DNA of 64,000 nt, taken from Zygnema circumcarinatum SAG 698-1b (taxonomy: Eukaryota > Plantae > Zygnematophyceae). Below are positions 5,919 to 52,202 of this stretch, in pieces. Position 1 is the stretch's first letter, and every line of letters starts with the position of its first letter. The translations under genes and the position numbers were made by a program. The stretch spans positions 1,488,001 to 1,552,000 of the forward strand of contig CM074808.1 in NCBI GenBank assembly GCA_037447605.1, given 5' to 3'. The notes under the pieces were generated by a model. That model did not search any database. It had not been told where the DNA came from and saw only the letters and a program-made list of their open reading frames with translations.

Positions 5919-8539
5919 ATGGAGTTGCGTATGTTCTTTGATTGCAGCGTGGCTTACATGGACGAGAGCGGCTGTGTCCATTTCTGTCTCCCTATTTATG
6001 TGGACGTGGGAGGCGTCTGTCATGCGTCTCTTGCAGGCATCCGCGCATTCAGCGGTGCCATGGATGAGGCCGTTCTTGAAAGATATGGTCCGGTGAATTT
6101 GCACGAGTTTTATGCGATTGCACAGGCCAGGCTGATGCTTGAAAGGGAGGAGCAAAAGAGGCTTATGGAATGCGTGCTCGAGGAAATGATTCAGCGCGTG
6201 CGGGAAATGAAGCGAATGAAGGCGAAGTCCAAGCTGCAGCTGCTTCACAAAAACAATGCCAGTATCAAACAGCCAAACATGAAAGGTGACCACCTATCCT
6301 ATTGAGAGCAATTGTGTGGGAGAGTGAGTCAGAAAAGTTTGGTTCCTTGATTTCCAATTCACGTATCTTATCAGTTATTTCTTTGCGTCTGTACAGTTGA
6401 AACGACGCTTTTCTTGCCAATTGATAGGCTACGGTTTACGTGTAGCATTTCTTTTGTTGAATGTGAATGCTTTGATTTTATTTTGTACGTCTAGATCTTA
6501 CGAATTAGGATGTATTGAGATATGCTTGCAGCGGTTTTGAATTCTTACGGCATTTAGCCCGAGTGCACCCTCCTGATTCAGCTGTATGATGGTGGAATTT
6601 GCCTATGGAAAACAGACCTGTTGCTTCGGGAGCTTTGGGACGATCATCAAGGCAATCATGTCTCGTCCTTCCAAGCGAAGAGGGAAATCAATTCCAAACA
6701 CCTGGTAAAGAGGATGTCACTGTACATGAATTCTCTGGTGATGAGAGATAGTCCGGCTTGTCTTTCGGTTCAGCTGGGGCTCTGTTTGGAAATTCTTTAC
6801 TGGAGTGATAAACAGCATACTTGGTAGTTCCTGCTTCTGGCCATGTATGTTGTTGAAGAGTTGTGGCATGCTTACGTCCGTGTCAAAAGTGCCCAGGAGT
6901 TCAATTTCTTGAATCTTTCTTTATACACGAGCTGATGTTTTTACTACGGATGTTGCAGGCTCCAACACGCCTTCACACTCGCTGTGGGATGATGCCACGA
7001 TGCACAAAGAACAGAGTTCACAATCTGCATCAACCTCGGGCCGCTGTATATTGATGTACAGGGCTGGTTTTACTGCCGCTACCTGCCATTGGCAAGACAC
7101 TGTAAACTTGTGAAACTAGTTAGTGAGCGACAACTTCAGTGCACGCTGTATACGAGGGGCCTGCCAAAATGTTGCGTAGCTCGTCAAAACACCCTTCCGA
7201 CAAAAAACTGTAGATTTGTGAAATATGTTGGGTAGGCAAAGGTCACTTGTTTCAGAGATCCGTGACCCACGTCCGTCAACAGCGTTGTGGATACAAAGAG
7301 GAAGTAGGAAGCTGTTTTATCAAACTGATGGTCTGTAAATATTGACTTCGGTTGCGTTCACTGTTTGTTTCCTTGCATCTCGCGAGAGTATTGCTGATCT
7401 GCATGAGGATGATTAGGTAGGCGGGATAGGCGATTTCCGCATCATTCTCCCCCCCCCCCCCCCACCCATCAGTTTTTGCGCCCAAATGCCGTGCTTTTGT
7501 CAGTTTTGTGTAGAACACACGTTTACCGAAATGGCATTTCTCGGGGTGTACACAAACTGTGTTGGAGTTGAAAAACCCAAAGAGACGGAGGTTCGGATTG
7601 AAACGTTTGCTGGTGGAGGCATTTTGGAGTGGACTTTGGCCCTACTGTCGCACTTGTCTGCCTCGTCCGGCTCGCTCGGCAGGCGGCACTGGGCTGCTGA
7701 TATCACAAGTCCGTTCACGCCGCAGGTTGGGACACTGACAACAACAGGGACAACTCTGCCACACGGAACTGTCGCCAAAGTGGTCCCGCCGTTACTGGAC
7801 TTTTCTACAAAGCGGACTTGAAGGTTGTGCAGCAGCACATGGCTTTTGGCTGCAATCGGCACGAGAGTTGACGTTTTATACAAAAAAAACATCACAAACG
7901 TAGGGAGCAGTTCGAGCGGGCACCACAATTTAAGGGCTGAGCTGGCCTACAGTTCAATAGGTAATAAAGGGTGGAACTCGCACTTCAGCAACGCAGACCA
8001 TCAAACAAAAGAAATGGGAGGAGAACATCCCTCACAAGCCGCCAAGCGATTCACTTGCTGACTGCTCTTTATTTTTTTAGCAGAAAGGTTGCACAGATAA
8101 ATTCATGTGCGCCAATGCCGAAGCTGGACCAGACATGGCCCCTTTGTGTGGATTAAAATATCGGCGAACAATTCTTTCTCTGGATAGAGATTAGAAGCCG
8201 GCCCATCTTCAGAAGCCAGTGATGCGGCAAAGGCTGCCAGGCTGCGAGGCATGGCTCCTCAGGGCGGGATTTTTACATAGAACGACTTCAAGTGACCAGC
8301 AGTTGAACTTGAAACGGTAACCAGGACGGCTCATGTATACGAACATAGAAAAGCCACAAACCAAAGGAGAGCCCAAGTGGCCTGACCTCCATGGCGTTTT
8401 CGTCTTCGAAGACGAAGAAGCTCTGGAGGAACTCAAATATTCAGATGTTATGGTCCCGTCACAGCTCTCAGTTAAGGTCCTCCCAAACCTGACACATGGA
8501 ACAGGAAACATTACGAGGCACGGGTCAGATGTAGATTAG
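5919..8539 (+). CDS. Putative multi-exon gene of unknown function
   Basis: First exon MELRMFF...QPNMK|G ends at a GT donor near 6287 and contains a coiled-coil-like segment. Candidate later exons near 7510-7730, 7830-7950 and 8324-8539 can be joined in compatible phases, but no family was recognised and the model is ambiguous. Confidence 0.35.
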
Positions 8540-16830: not shown

Positions 16831-17026
16831 ATACCTTTCTCGGCCTTTTGGCTAAGATCAAGTGTAGTATCTGTTCTTATCAGTTTAATATCTGATACGT
16901 GGTCCATCGGACCACATGATATTAACCTAATTTTTCAGGGTGGAGGGTCCAAAGGCCAGCTTGCTGGTCGGATCCTTCAGCGTCGCCTCAGTATTGCACT
17001 ACATCTGAGGTCGGTGCAGCCCTCCC
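16831..17026 (+). ncRNA. U2: U2 spliceosomal snRNA
   Basis: Begins ATACCTTTCTCGGCCTTTTGGCTAAGATCAAGTGTAGTATCTGTTCTTATCAGTTTAATATCTGATA, including the branch-point recognition sequence GTAGTA. It has an Sm site (AATTTTTCAG), a stem-loop IV loop (TATTGCACT) and a downstream 3'-box-like CA..AGTCAAT at about 17041-17060. Confidence 0.97.
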
Positions 17027-18303: not shown

Positions 18304-21300
18304 TCAAGGACGGAGCCACTCCAAAATATGGGCAGCCGCCAGTTCAGGTCGGTCGTCGTGGGGGCAATGGCCCACATCCTTGAGAGGCACCACGCTCACA
18401 TTGGCTCCCTCCAGCTCCATTTTTTTGAAGTAACGAGCCAACTGTCAAACCACCATACGCCAGATCAATATGAGGTACAGGCAATGACAACCATCACAAC
18501 CGACTTTTCATGACTAATTTCATACTTTCCTGAAACATTTGGATACTCTGTGCACAGGAGACACTCAGTAAGCAGATCAACATCTGTGGAGCAAATGGCT
18601 GTGCTGGATGGCAGCCAGGTTGGAGGACTACTGCCAAACAATTACTTGCCAGGCCAATTCAGAACATCGTATCTTATCACCTTCTTCAACGTGCACCAGT
18701 TCTGGATCAAAGGACTGCATTGTTGAGCCCATACTAGCATAGACACCCGATGACACACGTGATATTCAGTTGTAACGTTTACATTTGATTCACATGCCAA
18801 CCTTCATGAATGTGAGGTGATACAAAGAATCCACCACTTGAACATACCCTTCCATTTACTGACGTCCAAGGATCACGATCGCCCCACAAAACCAGCATAG
18901 GCAAATCAATTTTCTTCATCAACACCTCCGGCCTTGGTCCTGCAAGACCCACGGGAGCAAGTCAGATCCACTGATCCAAACAGAAAAGAGTGCATAGGCA
19001 CTTCTGGAAATGCAAACCTAAGCTGCATGAAGAAGCAAGACAAAAGAACTTCTGCCCACCTGGCTCTCCTGTGAAAACCTTCACGAAAACGTCAACAGCG
19101 CCAGGATGATTTGATGGCTCGTACAAAATGTCCACCTGCAAACACAGCCCTCATCCTTTGCTTATAAGTCAAACAACTAATTTACAAACTACACAGTCTA
19201 CAATTGCTTAGTAGATTACAACTGCATTCATTACATTTGAAAAAAAATTATGGTGAAACGGAAGTAGGGAAAAAAATGGCCTTTCAACATAAGCTTAAAC
19301 TAAAGCATCTAATAAGGAATTTACCAGATGATCCGTAACAGCATTTCTGTCGCGGTACACTTGCTGCTGCAGAATTTTGCGTACATTGGCTTTGCTCCTG
19401 AACCTGCAGCCATGCCGACCCCTACTCTTAACCCTAGCTTGAAACGACACAAAAAAAAAACACACAATAATGACTCCACTGTCTTGATATGCACGCATGA
19501 AGGATAACCTTAGCAATAGGGTAGAAACATACTTATCAAAAAGGAAGTTTGCAACACGGGGATCGCGAAGCAGATTTTCAATCACAATGAAGATCGGAGA
19601 TAGGGCCGCTAGTAGTGCGCCCTCTTGTAGCAGGCCTTTACGATTCATGCCACCTGCCACGTTCAAGAGCACCAAACTACTGCAAGCCCAACCAGCAAAT
19701 ACATGAGAAAAAAATCAATTATAATGAAAGTGAGATCCACCCCCCTCCCACCCCGCAAACTTGCGTCAAGTGTCTAAAGCATGTTCAATATCTGTCAGAT
19801 GCCAACTAAGAAGCTTTGTAGTCGCCACTGGCCTAGAGACACCCATAGAGGCTTCAAGAGAAAAAGACTCTAAGGGTTAATAAGTACAAATCCTTGACGA
19901 AATTAAAAATAATAGGTTGCCTGAACTTTTGTCACACCAACAGGCTTGAATACGAAAGCAGCATACCTGAAGCACCCTGGCTCAGCTTTGGCAGCTGCAT
20001 TCATAGCAGTTAACGAGCCAATTGAATTTCCAATAAGCACTGCAGGTTCCTCAGCAAACTCTTTGGCGAAATCTGCATGGCCAAGTCCAGTTTAGCTTAA
20101 TAAGCCACTGGCTTCCACAGGCTCGAGAACTTTGTAAGAAGACGTTCAGAAACCGTGATAACACCAAATGCAGTCGACCAAACAAATCCAGAGAAAGAAT
20201 CGTTGCCAATATGGCATCGGCGCCACCAAAAATCTCAGTTAATCGATGCAAACACAATGGCCTTTCTAAGATACTATAGAGAACAGAAACTTGAAGCTAT
20301 CAATCTTTAAGAGTGTGATGTGGGAGAATATGGACGAAACTGTCATTGAAAAGCAAGTAACCTTCAATCTCCAACACTCGCTCAACCATCCTCAACCACT
20401 CCTCACCAAGAATTATGTCAGCCCAGAGATCCGGACCATACGGCGCATCCCGAGGCTTGTCCGAATCACCGAATCCAAGGAGGTCCACCGAATACACACG
20501 ATGGTGGTCTGCTAAATGAGCAATCAAGTTCCGAAAATGACCTGCATTGCCTCCTGTGAATGGAAACATGAACAAAAAGATAGGAAGCTTAGGCTAAAAA
20601 ATGTACACTGAATTTGGGAAACGTAATGAACAGGACACTTTTAGTTCTCAACAATTTGAAGTAGCGAAGACCTTGCCTGCGTTGACCTAACAATGAGGCA
20701 AGATCTTGCCTTTCGACAAAATCGTGCAGAACAATGACAAGCCCACATTAAGCAAAATTATGTGCAGGATCAGATAGAAGTATCAGTGCAGAGACATCAA
20801 GCATGGAGACAACATAAAGGTGTGAAACGAATCACGAGGAAGGCATCCGACCACCAAAGCACGGCAGCAGCGCAAGTTCCACTGAACAAAATGAATCGAT
20901 TCAGAAGCTTTCCACAGGAGGCAGAAAGGTGGGCTTCTAGACAAATGCAGACAAGCCATGCAGGGATAGAATTTGAGCATAATGTTCGGGAAGCCCAGAC
21001 CCAGCCTTTCATCGACAAGAATCATCTGGCCAGGCAGACAGCCCCCAAATTAATCTCTGTGCACATAGTCGCTCGCATTTCAACAGCCAGAAGGCCTCCA
21101 GCCAGCCGGCTTAATTGCGCACAGTGGAAAATCCAGCCTATTCGATATGAAATCAATAGAGATGTCTTACGGACACGTACCAAACCCGTGCACCAGGATG
21201 ATAGGCTTCCCGCAGCCAGCAACCGCATAGCTAAGTTTGTGTCCTCTGTTACAAAACAGACAAACAAACGTAACCAATGAGTCCCAAAATCCACTTCTGC

Positions 21301-23378
21301 TGTTCTTCTCACACTCGAGGCTTGCAGTCGTCCGCACTAGTACTAGGTTTCATGCATCATAGCCCCTAAAAGTTCCGTAGTCAGAGAAAGTCGCTTGCAC
21401 CATCTGCATCTGTATCGGGCTCAAAGAGAACATCAGAGCATTTAGGACTCCCCAAGCACAGAAATAATATCCATTTCAAGAGTGCGATTATTAGCAGATC
21501 ATGTCCGGGAAGCCCAGACCCAGCCTTTCATTGACAAGAATCATCTGGCCAGGCAGACAGCCCCCAAATTAATCTCTGTGCACATAGTCGCTCGCATTTC
21601 AACAGCAGTAAGGCCTCCAGCCAGCCGGCTTAATTGTGCACAGGCGGAACAACATTTCATCGGGACTCGGATTAAATTGTAATAGCACATTGCTCCATCA
21701 ATCTGTCAGTTTTGCACGCTTCTTTACAACCTATTTCAAGCTACGGCGCCTAGACGAAGCAGATCTCAGAGTAGATGCAGGCTCCTATAATCCTCAACAT
21801 CCATAGTCACAAAATTCCAAAAAATTCAAAGCAACAAACTCGCAGAGATTCAAAAGCCGTATCTTCGCAAGATAGGATGCCTTTGGGACTGCAATCAGGT
21901 AAAAATCATGGAGTTCCTTCTCTCGGTGCATACAAATCTATCAATATATAACCTTCCAAACGGGCACATCCGCATAACAGGGCGATGCATGAAATAGATC
22001 ATGCACAAATGTAAGTGATGACAGATGTATTACAAGGTAAAATATAAAAAGGTACTTGGTTACAAATAAAGAAGGGAAGCAATAATTACCAACCTCCACA
22101 TCCAAGAGTGCGACTTGAAAGGAAGTGCCAAAAAGTCCTCTTCTGCTTTATGCACTCCGTTCACAATTTCTGTCAGCGAGACTCGCCATTCCACTTCAAG
22201 CTGAACTGTCACACTCCCACCTCGCAAGCCACCCTGCTTTGGGGAACCCACCCATACTCCTTGCACACCATCCAGCTCAAGAAGCCTTTCTTCTAATCTG
22301 CACCGAAACATAACAAAAAGTAATAGAACATTAGGTTCACGGATGATACGGTCCACGACCATCAAATAAGGAAGGGTTCCAGTTAAAAACTGAAAGGTGT
22401 GGTAGTCGAGGGTGTCGGGGGAGGGTCACGAATAGCTCGAAGCAATCCATCAAGAACGACTGCTCAATTGTCAAAATTGTGGAATGATTCTTGATTCTTC
22501 GAGCATTTTGCTTAAGATTAACAAGCTTCAGATCCACCGCACATACCTGAGCAAGGCTTCGTCATCTAGAGTACCATGAATCCTGCAAATACCAACAGCA
22601 CACATGTGAGCACAAAACCACCTTCCTAGTGCAAAGAGTATGCTAAGACCTCCACAGGTAATGACCAGTAAGAGTCCAACCACTTGAACTAATAACAAGA
22701 CAAGCAAAACCCAAGTAGCTATGCAAACACAAGAACATTTCCAAACGTCTGTCTGAATCACCTAAGAAACCTTCAGAAATAGAGCGAGCCAACTAGCTGA
22801 TCAGTGCTAATTATAACAAAGACCACCTACTAACGCAGTGCAAACTACCTTTGCCGCGAGATTGAGAAAAGTAGACACAAAACAAAATGTAAGAACAATC
22901 GAAACGCTTCTAAGATTTCCAAACGAGTAACTGCGAAGTTCACACAGTTACTATTCCAAAAGAAGAGGATGCGCCATACATACGTTAAGGACACGGTACG
23001 CGTGTCGTCAATAGATCGGCGAAGATCTTCACTGGGCGCAGATACAGCCTCAATCATCTCAGCTATTTCCACCTCTGCCTCCTTACGCCTCTCATCTGCT
23101 GCACTGCGCTCCTTGACAGCTGCTGAGATTGCTGATCTTCCTCTCTTTAACGCAACTTTATTAACTCCAGGACATCCTACAGCTCCCTTACTCAGACCGC
23201 CAGTGGTATTCAGATATTCAGACTTCCAAGACACCAGCAAGTCCCCTGACAATTTCAAATCCTGCCAGCAACCACGCCTAGGGCTGCAAAGCCGTTTAGA
23301 CCCGGCGCAAGTTACTGCAGCAGTATGCACACAACCTGTGGCCGCTGATTCCAGCAAAAAGCTAGATGCAGTCGCCAT
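18304..23378 (-). CDS. Plastid alpha/beta hydrolase (CLD1/pheophytinase-like family) with an N-terminal HMA-like domain
   Basis: Exons give SHSWMWR / GHKLSYAVAGCGKPIILVHGFG / GNAGHFRNLI...VDLLGFGDSDKP / AVLIGNSIGSL (nucleophile elbow) / VLLNVAGGMN / LVLWGDRDPWT / DVGHCPHDDRPEL. The Ser-Asp-His triad motifs are intact and the splice phases I checked are consistent. Confidence 0.9.
20980..21124 (-). ncRNA. Intronic box H/ACA snoRNA, copy A
   Basis: 145 nt: hairpin closed by CTGTGCGCA/TGTGCACAG, H box AGATTA, second hairpin (GGGGGC/GCTTCC lower stem, CCTGGCC/GGCTGGG upper stem) and ACA 3 nt from the end. It lies on the host strand inside an intron. Confidence 0.8.
21499..21643 (-). ncRNA. Intronic box H/ACA snoRNA, copy B
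   Basis: Near-identical paralogue of copy A in the adjacent intron, with a perfect CTGTGCACA/TGTGCACAG stem, AGATTA H box and a terminal ACA followed by TGA. Confidence 0.8.
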
Positions 23379-25717
23379 GTACAAGTGCGCTACCCTACCC
23401 CGCTCGCCAGCAAAAACCTTCGTGTAGTCCCTGCAGCTGAGAACCCAAGCAGACGGCTTCACCGCAGCCGCCGCCGCCGCCTCCCCTCAACCCTCTCGCC
23501 CCACTCTGCGGCCCTGCAGGATCATACTGCAGCAAGCGAGCCAGCTAGCCAGTCAGCCAGCCTTGGGCAGAATATCTCGCCTTCCTCTCGTCCGAGGGCG
23601 CAGCGCGTGCGGCCACGTCGGCCTTTCGTCCCTCACTGCCACGCGGCGGCCGCCCATAGGCCAGCGGGCGCGCCTCGAAAGTGCCGCCCGCCCCGCGCTT
23701 TCGCCTTTCTTTCTTGCGCCTTCAGTGCCTGCGCCGCTTGTGCTTTGTTTGGCGCAGCCCTCCAGCCGACGTGCCCAAGCCCTGCCTGCCAAAGCAACGC
23801 GGGGCTCAGGGGGGGAAGGGCATTGGCGTTATGGGAGCCAATCCAGGTATGTCACGTGGCATCAGTTTTGACGTGGCACGCTATGAGTGGCGTGATCTTT
23901 ACGGAACACGCCAGCTGGTCCCACCCGTAGCGGTGCCCCACGCGGACCATGCCCACGCGGCTGCCCTCCCCCCCGCCGCGTGTGACATTGCTCGGCTGCA
24001 ACGAGTGAAGTGTGCGTGTGTATGGAGAGGGAAGTGGCATTGATCTCACAAGTGTACATGGCCATGGCATGTGCATGGCCTTCATTTGTGCTTGTTTCTT
24101 TGCGAATACTCCGAACGTTCGGCTCGCAACTACACGCCACGTACACGTACGTGGCGATGATCTGCGTGCGATTGGAGGTGCTCGACTGCGGTCGGTGTTG
24201 GAAATTTCGCAAAGTTTCGTAGACAGGGCTAAAAAGAACTATGAAAGTGAGCCGCGGCCATGAGAACTTGAGTATCTTATGTGTGTCAATGTCATACGTG
24301 GTCGTCACCTGACTCACCTATCAATCAGCGCGTTGGATAGTACGGTATAAAAGGAAGAGGACGGCCGTCCGACTGGGGATCAACGGCGAAACGCGAAACG
24401 AGTCACATGACAAACTGTGACCGCCGGATTCGCTTACTGAACGAGGAGAAAGCTGTGTAGTCGTCGCCTTCGTCAACCCGAAGGGGTGGTAAACTGACCT
24501 GCACGAGAAGTCAGTACTGTACCGTAAGAGAATGGCGGACTCCCCCGGTAGACGCCGCCTCATGTACATCTCGGAAGGTGAAATAGTCGTGAACGGTCTT
24601 GGAAAGCAACCGGATGGCATATGAAACAGCCGATCGGTTTCCACAAACACTGAGCTCTGTGACTGCCTCGACATTTCATGTTCACGCTACCGGCAAACAT
24701 GAAATGTCAAAACCTGCGCCGCATGCACTTTGCTGAATGCTGGATTATCATATCTGTCTGAATGTCCACTGCCTTGCATTCCAAATGCAGGGAAAGTGCC
24801 ATCCAGATTATGAGTTGTCCAATAAACACCATAGCAAAGAAACGGGTAAAGGGCCAAAATTTCCTAAGGAGACATGAGGACATGAGACTTAAGAACGAAT
24901 CATCAAGTCCACATGTCCCTGCCGATTCTGCAGAGCTTGTTCCAGAGTCTTAATCACGGCACCCAACACACTGGCCAAAAACCAACAATACTCGTTGGCA
25001 ACAATGATGGCTTCCAGCATATAAAAGTTTCGCTGTAGATAGACATTCTCATGCAATTACATGGACAAGAAACAGTCGGCAATAGTTGCTCACTTGAAGC
25101 TTCCCTCAACGATTCGTTTTTCAAAGTTGCTGCTCTCGACTTTGGAGTTACAGATTGTGTCAAGACTTTCGACTTCTGTAAAAAAATATTTTCTGAATGT
25201 AATGGGCCGCAAATTCATTGCAGTAATCAGAGAGGGTTTCAATATCCCTCGCAAAGTTTACAGGAAAATCCGAATTCATAGTCTCATTCCAACATTGGCC
25301 ACTCGAGGTAGCTGGAACGTTCACAAACTTTCTCGTGTAAACTAAAGTGCAAATGCATGGATGTGGAGGACAGGGGTTTTGCTCGAGAAATATTTGAACC
25401 TCTTGGAGGACATGAGGCAGCAAGTAATCGCCAGATGAAACTGAAGTGTGCTATGAGTGGGGGATCAGATTTAAAAAAGTTTCACACATATTCGAAATCA
25501 GTAAGCATTGTCCCGCGAAATCGATAGTAACAGCGAAATAAAGAATACTGCTTTCAAAACAAATTCAGTACAGCAACATGCTAAGCCGGAACCTCCCCCT
25601 ATCGCTGGAAAGTGACAACAGATAACTGACATCAGCAGACTACGAGAATTTCGAACAATCTGATCTTAGAGCCATATTGCAACTTATCTGAATTTGAAAA
25701 ATCGTTGTACACCATTG

Positions 25718-38711: not shown

Positions 38712-38779
<68 letters not shown>

Positions 38780-38782
38780 GAG
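38712..38782. repeat. (GA)n microsatellite
   Basis: Seen directly. Confidence 0.95.
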
Positions 38783-39146
38783 AGAATTTTTTCAAGCGGT
38801 GTTAGTTTCTGAATAAAAATTGGGAAAAAAAGTGTAGTTTTACTTATTTGTTTCTTTCTTAGTTTCACTATCTCTCTGGCTCGCTCGCTCTTAGAAAGAA
38901 TTCCCTTGTCGTAGCAGCTCTCGCTCCTTTCCTCCTCTCCCACCCGCCTCTCCCGCCTCCTCCTCGGCCTCTCCCAGCTCTCGCTTCTACCTCTCGCCAG
39001 TTGTCACTGAACCCTCCTCCCTCTCCCTCGCCTGCTCTCATCTCTCCCTCTCCCTCGCCCTCTCCCCCCTCCTTCTGCTGGATTTCTTCTACTCCACTCC
39101 GGCCGTCACACTGGTCTGCGCCAGCGCAGGCCCATATTTACGAGTT

Positions 39147-49800: not shown

Positions 49801-52202
49801 CCAGTTGTGGACTTTGACAACAGTGACGATGCGTGGCAGCGTTACGACAAAAGTACGTGTTCAATTCATGGACCCTTCCTTCCTAGCACGCACAGACTAA
49901 CGTGACGTTTCCCTTCTTCATCACATACGATCTGGGGAAACTCTAACACCACGCAGTCCTTTCCCTTTCCCAACCTAATAGCAAATGACTCCCGGAACTA
50001 CAAATAGAACTAAGAGAAGCCTTAGATAAAGCTTCGACAATGGTGAGGAGGCTGATGACTATGAAGCGGTGGGGGGGGGCAGTGACTGCCCGCGAGCTGT
50101 TCCGTGCGTACGGCTGCTCCTCGCGCGTGTACGAGGAGGCCTTCAACCCGATGCTGCTCGTCGGCCTCTTCGCGCCCGGGGAACAGTGCAGCGCCGCGGC
50201 GGCTCTCGGGATGCTCTACTACTTCATCCTTGCGCACCAGGTGAGGGAGGGGAGGGAGGGAAAGAGGGAAAGAGGGAGGGAGGGAGGGAGGGAGGGAGAG
50301 NNNNNNNNNNGGGACGGTTCGGTTATGTTTGCACGATGCGAAAGGGGGCCCTGAGAATTACTTGAAGAGGGATGATGTTTGTGAAATGCGACGAAGAACT
50401 TATTTTCCTTCCTTGACCACTCTGTTGGGATGTGGAAGGAGGGGTGACAACTGCAGGCAGACTTTGATGTGGTGTGGTGTCGCGGAACAGTGGGAGATCA
50501 GATTTTCAGGCCCTGGGTGGAGCAGATATCTCGGCAGGGAGGCCGATTTTTGGCGAACAGGAGAGTGACAGATTTAATAGAGGACAGCAGCACAGGGCGG
50601 ATCACGGGAGTCAAATGCGGGGCGGAAGAGTTTGAAGCAGACGCAGTGGTCTTCGCTGTGGGAATAAACGGAATGCAGCGAATCGTTGAGAGCAGGTCAT
50701 GAGATAACCTTTCAGCTGCCTCGCCTTCGTTGGTGTTCGTTTCAGTTTTCTGTTTTGGGTTTTGCTGAATGGGGTTTGTGAGTGGGGGGTGTAACAGCGC
50801 TGTGCTGAAGAAGCGTGAGGAGTTTGCAAACACTTCCAACTTGGGGGCAGTTGATGTGTTGGCAGTGCGGCTGTGGTTGGATCGCAAAGTAAGGGGACGA
50901 TATCCTTTCGACTATTTGTTTCGGGCGCATGTGCATGTGGGTGACATTTCTTAATATGACCGACCTATGAATGTTGCTCCCAACACTCGCCTCGATTGTA
51001 TCGTTTCTGTACTTTACCTGGCAGGTGCCCATACCCAAACCTAGCAATGCCTGCTTTGGATTCGACACAACGACCGGGTGGACGTTCTTTGACCTAAACG
51101 CGCTGCATGACGAGTTCAAAGACGAGCCCGGGACAGTGGTCGAGGCAGACTTTGTGAGTCTTTTTCTCTGTGCCCTTCTTGCATTGCAGCCCCTTTTGCG
51201 GGTTTGCTTCTATGCTGAACTTTGCACAAATTTTCATATGAGTGTAGTGAACTTGGTATGAAATTTTGACAACCTGACTGTGAGGAAGCTTCTCACTGCC
51301 GTTGCCCTGCCCTGCCCTGCAGTATCATGCGAACCAGTTTCTGCCCATGAGCGATGATGCCATTGTGGCCAAAGTGCAGTCCTACCTCGCCACATGCATC
51401 CCCGAGTTCGGCAAAGCGGCAGTGCTCGACCGGGCGGTGGTGCGCTTCAGAAGGGCAGTGACACACTTCTTTCCAGGTGGGCCTTTAGGGTTTCTAGGGA
51501 TGGTCAGAAGAGCGGACTACAGTATTCCGAGTTGCCTTCAGGGTTCTACGTTTGCATGTGAAAGAATATTGGTTTGAAATCCTAGTCAAACTACCATGTG
51601 CTATGAGTGAACGCAATTTGAACAGCAAGCATAGAGGCACGGAAGAGAGGTCCTGGGAAAGGCACAGGAGGTGATGGAATTCTGAAACAAAGCTGGTAAG
51701 TTGGGGAAAATCATCCCTCGTTCGAACCCTGTACTCGCCTGAGAGCTTGGTAAGTGTTTTGAGAATGATGTGAGGACGACTCTGTGCGGAGTGCAGGCTC
51801 CTACCAGTACCTTCTAAGGGGGACCACGAGCTTCAGCAATCTGTTCATGTCGGGCGATTGGATCATCACCAACCACGGGTCGTGGTCCCAGGCATGCTCT
51901 CCCTCTGTTTGGAAACCATTGCTTGTTTGGGACATGAATTGCAGTTGGGGGAGACTGAGGTCTTTAAAATGTGAGTAATACTCACTTGAAGGAGCTGGGC
52001 CTGTGCGAGTGTGGAGCAGGAGAAGGCCTTCGTGACGGGCCTTGAAGCAGCCAACCGGGTGATAGCCCTCCTTGGGGAGGGCGAGCCTGCCCGCCTCGTT
52101 CCTGTGGAGGAGGACGAGCCCCATGTGAGGCAGCTGCGGACTGTGAACAAGGCGGCAAGGGAAGTCCTGTCCATGGCGCCATTCAGCAACATGTTTTTGT
52201 AG
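46806..52202 (+). CDS. Plastid FAD-dependent oxidoreductase (amine oxidase / phytoene-desaturase-like family); about 13 exons
   Basis: Rossmann motif VVVVGAGWAGLGAAHHLSKQ / GFDVTLLEA...GGLVAGW / GFWYPYRNIF / VESPIFQEMPRLPSPLG / FAPGEQCSAAAALGMLYYFILAHQ / ADFDVVWCRG / AVTHFFPG / SFSNLFMSGDWIITNHGSWSQ / EKAFVTGLEAANRV. Confidence 0.92.
48090..48121. repeat. (TAAAAACCC)3 telomere-like repeat (TTTTTAGGG) in intron 1 of the oxidoreductase
   Basis: Seen directly. Confidence 0.8.
48705..48810. repeat. (GA)n-rich microsatellite, intronic
   Basis: Seen directly. Confidence 0.9.
50301..50310. other. Assembly gap (10 N) in a purine tract within an intron
   Basis: N bases. Confidence 0.99.

Follow-up and report, generated by a model that had tools for sequence, protein, structure and literature searches.

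The DNA analyzed here is a stretch of 64,000 nucleotides from the alga Zygnema circumcarinatum SAG 698-1b, referred to as the window. Its minus strand carries a gene for an N-terminally extended alpha/beta hydrolase that belongs to the pheophytinase-like group. The approximate extent of this gene (18310-23430) was set by a Pfam Abhydrolase_1 match, a tblastn exon map, and comparison with orthologues. Two introns of this gene each hold one copy of a short direct repeat, and this repeat is the subject of the present work. Copy A occupies positions 20979-21124 in the downstream intron and copy B positions 21498-21643 in the upstream intron, both on the minus strand. As laid out below, the two copies probably represent genes for a box H/ACA small nucleolar RNA (snoRNA), i.e., a guide for the conversion of uridines in 18S ribosomal RNA (rRNA) to pseudouridine (Psi).

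Two repeat copies in consecutive introns of a hydrolase gene

A repeat search of positions 20000-22600 detected a single family of direct repeats, consisting of two copies of 146 nt each that are 95% identical and spaced 519 nt apart. An earlier note on this DNA had described a near-identical direct repeat of 145 nt, and the search and the alignment bore this out at a length of 146 nt. Across the window, a 29-nt core of the unit occurred exactly twice, compared to no occurrence in 100 shuffles, and copies A and B were the only matches of a covariance model trained on them (190 and 191 bits, respectively). Both copies are intronic and sense-oriented relative to the host gene.

The splicing of the host gene was followed in four RNA sequencing (RNA-seq) runs of the same organism, using contigs on 20400-22200. 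The splice joints 20552/21180 and 21245/22094 were present in all four runs, and both read CT..AC on the plus strand, which equals GT..AG on the minus strand. According to these joints, copy A lies in an intron of 627 nt (20553-21179, minus strand) and copy B in an intron of 848 nt (21246-22093, minus strand), which confirms that the repeats sit in consecutive introns on either side of a short exon. The length of this exon had been estimated as roughly 70 nt and was corrected to 66 nt (21180-21245, minus strand) by the same joints. Within the hydrolase, this exon codes for the segment ...GHKLSYAVAGCGKPIILVHGFG.

In run X11, the intron of copy A was connected to the 66-nt exon by a contig (20680-21209) at about one-tenth of the exon depth, a sign of intron retention or of unspliced RNA. 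The intron of copy B had no coverage in this run. In run X2, both snoRNA introns were found at about one-third to one-half of the exon depth.

The host gene is expressed and spliced, and its exons contain the Abhydrolase_1 match. Full-length relatives were found in Closterium, Mesotaenium, bryophytes, lycophytes, and ferns, with pheophytinase named among the more distant ones. The distribution of these relatives marks the organism as a streptophyte, probably a charophyte alga. Identity to the host gene amounted to 85-91% in the two best-conserved exons and to 43-72% over the other aligned stretches. With regard to the earlier description of the host as a plastid hydrolase rather than a translation gene, the Pfam match and the homologues identify a hydrolase, and the plastid location is a prediction suggested by the protein family and a Ser/Thr/Ala-rich N terminus. 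The long extension that precedes the alpha/beta fold (22094-23430, minus strand) is common to the Closterium, bryophyte, lycophyte, and fern orthologues. A Pfam search of the first host exon found nothing, and the pheophytinase-named matches of seed plants in the same homologue search covered just about 55-57% of the host query.

H/ACA architecture of the repeat unit

On the minus strand, each copy reads in the order hairpin, AGAUUA, hairpin, ACA, and folds into the hairpin-hinge-hairpin-tail structure that characterizes H/ACA snoRNAs (all positions in this paragraph refer to the minus strand). The first hairpin consists of a lower stem of 8 bp (CUGUGCGC/GUGCACAG), a pocket, and a modest upper stem of 3+2+3-4 bp. 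The 5' arm of this pocket is AAUUAAGCCG (21107-21116 in copy A and 21626-21635 in copy B), and its 3' arm is GACUAU (21065-21070 and 21584-21589, respectively). The H box AGAUUA follows at 21051-21056 in copy A and 21570-21575 in copy B and fits the consensus ANANNA. The second hairpin has a lower stem of 6 bp (GGGGGC/GCUUCC), a pocket formed by UGUCUG as the 5' arm (21035-21040; copy B 21554-21559) and UCUGG as the 3' arm (20995-20999; copy B 21514-21518), and an upper stem of 7 bp with a 21-nt loop. It is followed by CGA, the ACA box (20983-20985; copy B 21502-21504), and a 4-nt tail. The spacing from the top of the pocket 3' arm to the H or ACA box is exactly 14 nt in both pockets and falls within the range of 14-16 nt expected for H/ACA guides.

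The two copies differ at seven positions, namely 7, 35-37, 112, 139, and 144 of the unit, and all 27 pocket-arm bases as well as both boxes are unchanged. The sole difference within a stem turns a G-U into an A-U pair in the 5' lower stem and keeps the pairing, and all 29 pairs of the canonical structure hold in both copies. The apical part of hairpin 1 accounts for three adjacent differences, for which one insertion and one deletion would be an equally valid reading. The remaining ones were found in the apical loop of hairpin 2, just before the ACA box, and just after it (one each). Both the order of hairpins and boxes with its 14-nt spacing and the confinement of the differences to apical loops, pairing-preserving changes, and the surroundings of the ACA box had been claimed before, and the fold and the alignment of both copies agree with these claims.

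Judging from established H/ACA biology, the RNA would be released after splicing, when the intron lariat is debranched and exonucleases trim it down to the portion protected by Cbf5/dyskerin, Nop10, Gar1, and Nhp2. The 5' end of the RNA would then lie at the base of hairpin 1 and its 3' end 3 nt past ACA.

Predicted target uridines in 18S rRNA

The targets were scored on the rRNA of a fen-metagenome contig (L011), which is probably of non-plant origin. It was found via a 20-mer spanning the proposed site and contains complete small-subunit (SSU), 5.8S, and large-subunit (LSU) rRNA according to Rfam. The fold was used to fix the pocket geometry, every uridine in approximately 5.6 kb of rRNA was scored, and the scores were compared to those of 500 arm shuffles. 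For the 3' pocket, the unique best target was CCAGG[U]CCAGACA, where UGUCUG forms 6 bp with CAGACA and UCUGG forms 5 bp, one of them G-U, with CCAGG. The score of 10.5 compares to 7.0 for the runner-up and was reached by 1 of the 500 shuffles. For the 5' pocket, the best target was GGAGCC[U]GCGGCUUAAUU, i.e., GGAGCC[UG]CGGCUUAAUU, with a score of 11.5 compared to 5.5 for the next site and 7 of the 500 shuffles reaching the same value. In this case, the 5' arm forms 10 Watson-Crick pairs with CGGCUUAAUU, while the 3' arm is paired with GGAGCC at four of six positions, giving G-C, a mismatch, two pairs, a mismatch, and G-U when read outward from the target.

Both sites are those that the earlier note had put forward, including the partial pairing of the second arm at GCC[U]G. 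Its statement that the two pockets are aimed at one stretch of 18S rRNA is likewise correct, because the target uridines are 39 nt apart, with that of the 5' pocket upstream. The rule of bipartite complementarity (no fewer than 3 bp on each side and 8 bp overall) holds for the RNA overall with the 6+5 bp of the 3' pocket. Taken alone, the 5' pocket is borderline, with a single contiguous bp adjoining the target on its weak side. Both target stretches are present with the same spacing in a further 18S sequence (L056), the only one retrieved that carries a signature we take to be typical of green plants. The reference contig L011 additionally holds two 5S rRNA genes (6212-6330 and 6847-6965, minus strand) in the spacer from the LSU to the next SSU, which is a linked 5S-45S arrangement.

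The two uridines were identified by their distance from the position of 1-methyl-3-(3-amino-3-carboxypropyl)pseudouridine (m1acp3Psi), which is the U of GACUCAACACGGG and corresponds to yeast 1191, human 1248, and Arabidopsis 1192 (PMC8351944). The target uridine of the 3' pocket lies 23 nt after this position and is therefore equivalent to Arabidopsis U1215, a register confirmed by the next base, C1216, corresponding to human Cm1272. A Psi was mapped at Arabidopsis U1215 by Sun et al. 2019, with snoR140 as its guide and without a human or yeast counterpart (PMC8351944, Supplementary Table 3). The target uridine of the 5' pocket lies 16 nt before the m1acp3Psi position and therefore corresponds to human U1232 and Arabidopsis U1176. 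Human 18S Psi1232 has an occupancy of 98% in the RNase T1 fragment CC-Psi-Gp (1230-1233), and the next fragment is C-Psi-UAAUU-Psi-Gp (1237-1245) (Taoka et al. 2018, PMC6182160).

The closest known counterpart is Arabidopsis snoR140, an H/ACA snoRNA of 142 nt in an intron of At5g08180, which is clustered with another snoRNA and assigned to Psi677 via pocket 1 and to Psi1215 via pocket 2 (Chen and Wu 2009, PMC2685112). The RNA of the window resembles it in its length of 146 nt, its intronic location, and a 3' pocket directed at 18S Psi1215, and can be regarded as an analogue of snoR140 by target. The two differ in their genomic setting, as snoR140 is clustered with an H/ACA snoRNA in an intron of an NHP2-like gene, whereas the copies described here lie one per intron in two hydrolase introns. 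They also differ in the other pocket, which is predicted for Psi677 in snoR140 and scores best at the U1176 equivalent in the window RNA. The locus provides a target-defined link to Arabidopsis snoR140 and the plant-specific 18S Psi1215. Links from land-plant to algal snoRNAs have almost never been obtained by sequence search (PMC5122169), and hardly any snoRNA catalogues of streptophyte algae exist.

Since every sequence-level feature open to a check was found and both proposed targets survived an unbiased scan, we read the repeats, in line with the earlier note, as paralogous genes for one dual-guide box H/ACA snoRNA of about 143-146 nt that is similar to snoR140, encoded in sense orientation, and placed in a hydrolase intron of its own in each case. 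We put the probability of this reading at roughly 80%, with the architecture, the pattern of differences, and the unique target matches as its support. The 3' pocket would then guide the formation of Psi at the counterpart of Arabidopsis Psi1215. The locus is a new example of a gene type that is well known, and the understanding of how H/ACA guides act is unchanged.

Several observations weigh against this reading. In copy A, the three-way junction of the minimum-free-energy structure is more stable than the canonical 5' hairpin by approximately 5 kcal/mol, the upper stem of this hairpin is weak, and the folding-energy z-scores of -1.5 to -1.8 are not exceptional. The targets were scored on the 18S rRNA of other eukaryotes instead of the host's own, and the RNA-seq data, being assembled contigs of flat depth that break at the repeat, are uninformative on a discrete 146-nt RNA. 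Rfam gave no family match to the unit, neither at gathering thresholds or E<=1 across the whole window nor at E<=10 on 20500-22100. Only a U2 small nuclear RNA (snRNA) and noise were returned in these searches of the window, and no snoRNA family appeared at any threshold tried. Moreover, the covariance model found no homologue in the host-gene loci of three Closterium strains (L002, L123, L124) and Marchantia (L125), and neither did blastn or nhmmer in the locus of Closterium NIES-64. Support from covariation or conservation is therefore missing, and the structural conservation in relatives that the earlier note had looked to was not found in these loci, although a search confined to the orthologous host-gene loci of distant relatives is a weak test. 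Finally, Arabidopsis U1176 is not among the mapped or predicted Psi (PMC8351944), and the 3' arm of the 5' pocket carries a mismatch two positions away from the target uridine.

The latter two points lead to the question of whether the 3' hairpin alone acts as a guide. The 5' pocket could be an orphan or be aimed elsewhere, for instance at a site in the variable region V4 of the organism's own 18S rRNA, as for Psi677 of snoR140, whose pocket 1 has this other predicted target (PMC2685112), or at the 5'-domain sequence AUAGU(C/U)-U-N-(C/U)UUGAU. Base pairs near the target are critical, with at least 3 bp needed on each side, and internal mismatches close to the target sharply reduce activity in vitro (PMC6800473); here, a mismatch directly adjoins the closing pair. 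Natural yeast guides have up to two mismatches, up to three non-canonical pairs, and at least 3 bp per side, with 10 pairs being the maximum on one side (PMC6800473). Measured against these limits, the 5' pocket stands at the edge of the known range because of its arm with four of six positions paired and the mismatch near the target, while its two mismatches and one G-U are still inside that range. On the other hand, the geometry is fixed by the only available upper stem, and with this geometry the proposed site scored best in all rRNA by the margin given above. It moreover coincides with the near-stoichiometric Psi1232 of human 18S rRNA (PMC6182160). We consider function through the 3' pocket only a serious alternative, though a less likely one.

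With a relaxed geometry, U119 of the L011 18S rRNA gave 6+6 bp with one G-U for the 5' pocket. This candidate was set aside because three guide bases at the top of the pocket would have to stay unpaired and because U119, in our own register, would presumably lie 2 nt upstream of a conserved Psi (yeast 120, Arabidopsis 121). The 5' region of the L011 18S rRNA, which holds U119, is unlike that of L056, the one plant-looking 18S retrieved.

Returning to the dual-guide snoRNA, the lopsided 5' guide, with 10 bp on one side and the weak arm on the other, would most likely direct pseudouridylation at GGAGCC[U]G-CGGCUUAAUU, the equivalent of human Psi1232 and Arabidopsis U1176. From the pairing described, we give about even odds that this 18S uridine is the target of the 5' pocket. 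It is the same uridine as that addressed by the candidate guide for human Psi1232, and its distance upstream of m1acp3Psi, within the invariant GCC-U-GCGGCUUAAUU, is 16 nt. For the equivalent site in plants, neither a Psi nor a guide has been reported (PMC8351944). As a more far-reaching proposal, which we regard as tentative and somewhat below even odds, the 5' pocket may be the first guide of the plant lineage for this site, in which case the Psi would be ancient and occur in streptophytes despite its absence from the Arabidopsis maps. This provides a testable prediction, namely a second Psi at the human Psi1232 position that is in no plant map, and the predicted plant-lineage guide constitutes the modest added value of the locus.

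A different class of target was considered as well. Small Cajal-body RNAs (scaRNAs) of the H/ACA type share the architecture of snoRNAs and guide the modification of spliceosomal snRNAs, and the window contains a U2 snRNA gene at a distance of 4 kb. A direct reading of the sequence, however, found the UGAG motif of the Cajal-body (CAB) box in neither apical loop. U2 snRNA was rejected as a target, as the best scores on the U2 of the window were 4.5 and 3.0, compared to 11.5 and 10.5 on 18S rRNA. Because of the missing CAB motif and the missing U2 target, a scaRNA is highly improbable.

Origin of the second copy and layout of the introns

When copies A and B were aligned together with their flanks, the similarity extended from the initial C of CTGTGC (minus strand) to 4 nt past ACA. 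Beyond these borders, a global alignment of the flanks (55 nt upstream and 150 nt downstream) scored within the range of shuffled sequences. Abrupt borders together with nearly identical loops are what a recent copy-insertion would leave behind. The repeat could thus be a short piece of intron that is mobile or was duplicated, for example a short interspersed nuclear element (SINE), a miniature inverted-repeat transposable element (MITE), or a snoRNA-derived retrocopy. Such a piece would not act as a guide and would owe its likeness to an H/ACA RNA to chance or descent. The lack of a snoRNA homologue in the host loci of Closterium and Marchantia would fit such an element as well. However, only two copies occur in the 64 kb, both sense-oriented and intronic in one gene, and neither a target-site duplication nor an A tail was seen around them, nor a terminal inverted repeat of the unit. 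Furthermore, each of the two independent pockets has a known Psi site as its unique match, with the canonical spacing of 14 nt, and the changes between the copies leave boxes and pockets alone, with the lone stem change keeping its pair. Given this copy number and context, the lack of insertion marks, the two Psi matches, and changes that respect the structure, a mobile element or a chance look-alike is quite improbable, and the possibility of a SINE raised along with the original proposal found no support in the window.

An old duplication followed by selection does not explain well why even the loops of copies A and B are nearly identical beside flanks that cannot be aligned. Gene conversion limited to the unit, or the insertion of a copy of mature length, would explain both. 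The proposal that the second copy came about in one of these two ways is made with the same reserve as that of a first plant-lineage guide. If true, it would mean that snoRNAs can spread between introns without the hallmarks of retrotransposons. Mammalian snoRNA retrocopies (snoRT) occur dispersed and are marked by target-site duplications and A tails. The copies in the window are like them in that the duplicated unit is exactly the mature snoRNA and the flanks are unrelated, but differ in lacking such marks and in being 519 nt apart within one gene.

The layout with one snoRNA per intron had been called notable in the earlier note, which is overstated, as there is precedent in the green alga Ostreococcus tauri (PMC7671301). 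The organism studied here is not an angiosperm. Of the 131 snoRNAs of Ostreococcus tauri, 72 sit singly in an intron, and roughly every second host gene has no connection with ribosome or RNA functions. Host genes with two to three snoRNAs in consecutive introns are described as well (PMC7671301). The present locus is alike in having one snoRNA per intron, consecutive introns, and a host outside translation. In the chlorophyte Ostreococcus tauri, however, the worked example of consecutive introns concerns two different C/D snoRNAs (PMC7671301), whereas here near-identical H/ACA copies are found in a streptophyte. The locus accordingly adds a streptophyte case of the one-snoRNA-per-intron layout, as known from animals and Ostreococcus, in a metabolic host gene.

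Beyond the hydrolase gene, a full-length U2 snRNA gene was annotated at 16831-17024 (plus strand; Rfam 176.5 bits, model positions 1-192), approximately 1.3 kb past the 3' end of the host gene and on the opposite strand. A sub-threshold Rfam match to whalefall-1 at 52062-52115 (plus strand; 26.8 bits, E=0.009, gathering score 37) is probably due to chance, and the same probably applies to MIR2118/MIR533-like hairpins at 38724-38901 (plus strand; E=0.15-0.8). In the annotated orthologue of the host gene from Closterium sp. NIES-64 (L002 2001-8791, CANXGL010000792.1), several exon segments occur two to four times in tandem, with duplicated peptide stretches in the protein model, in keeping with either a tandem duplication at this locus or an artefact of the assembly.

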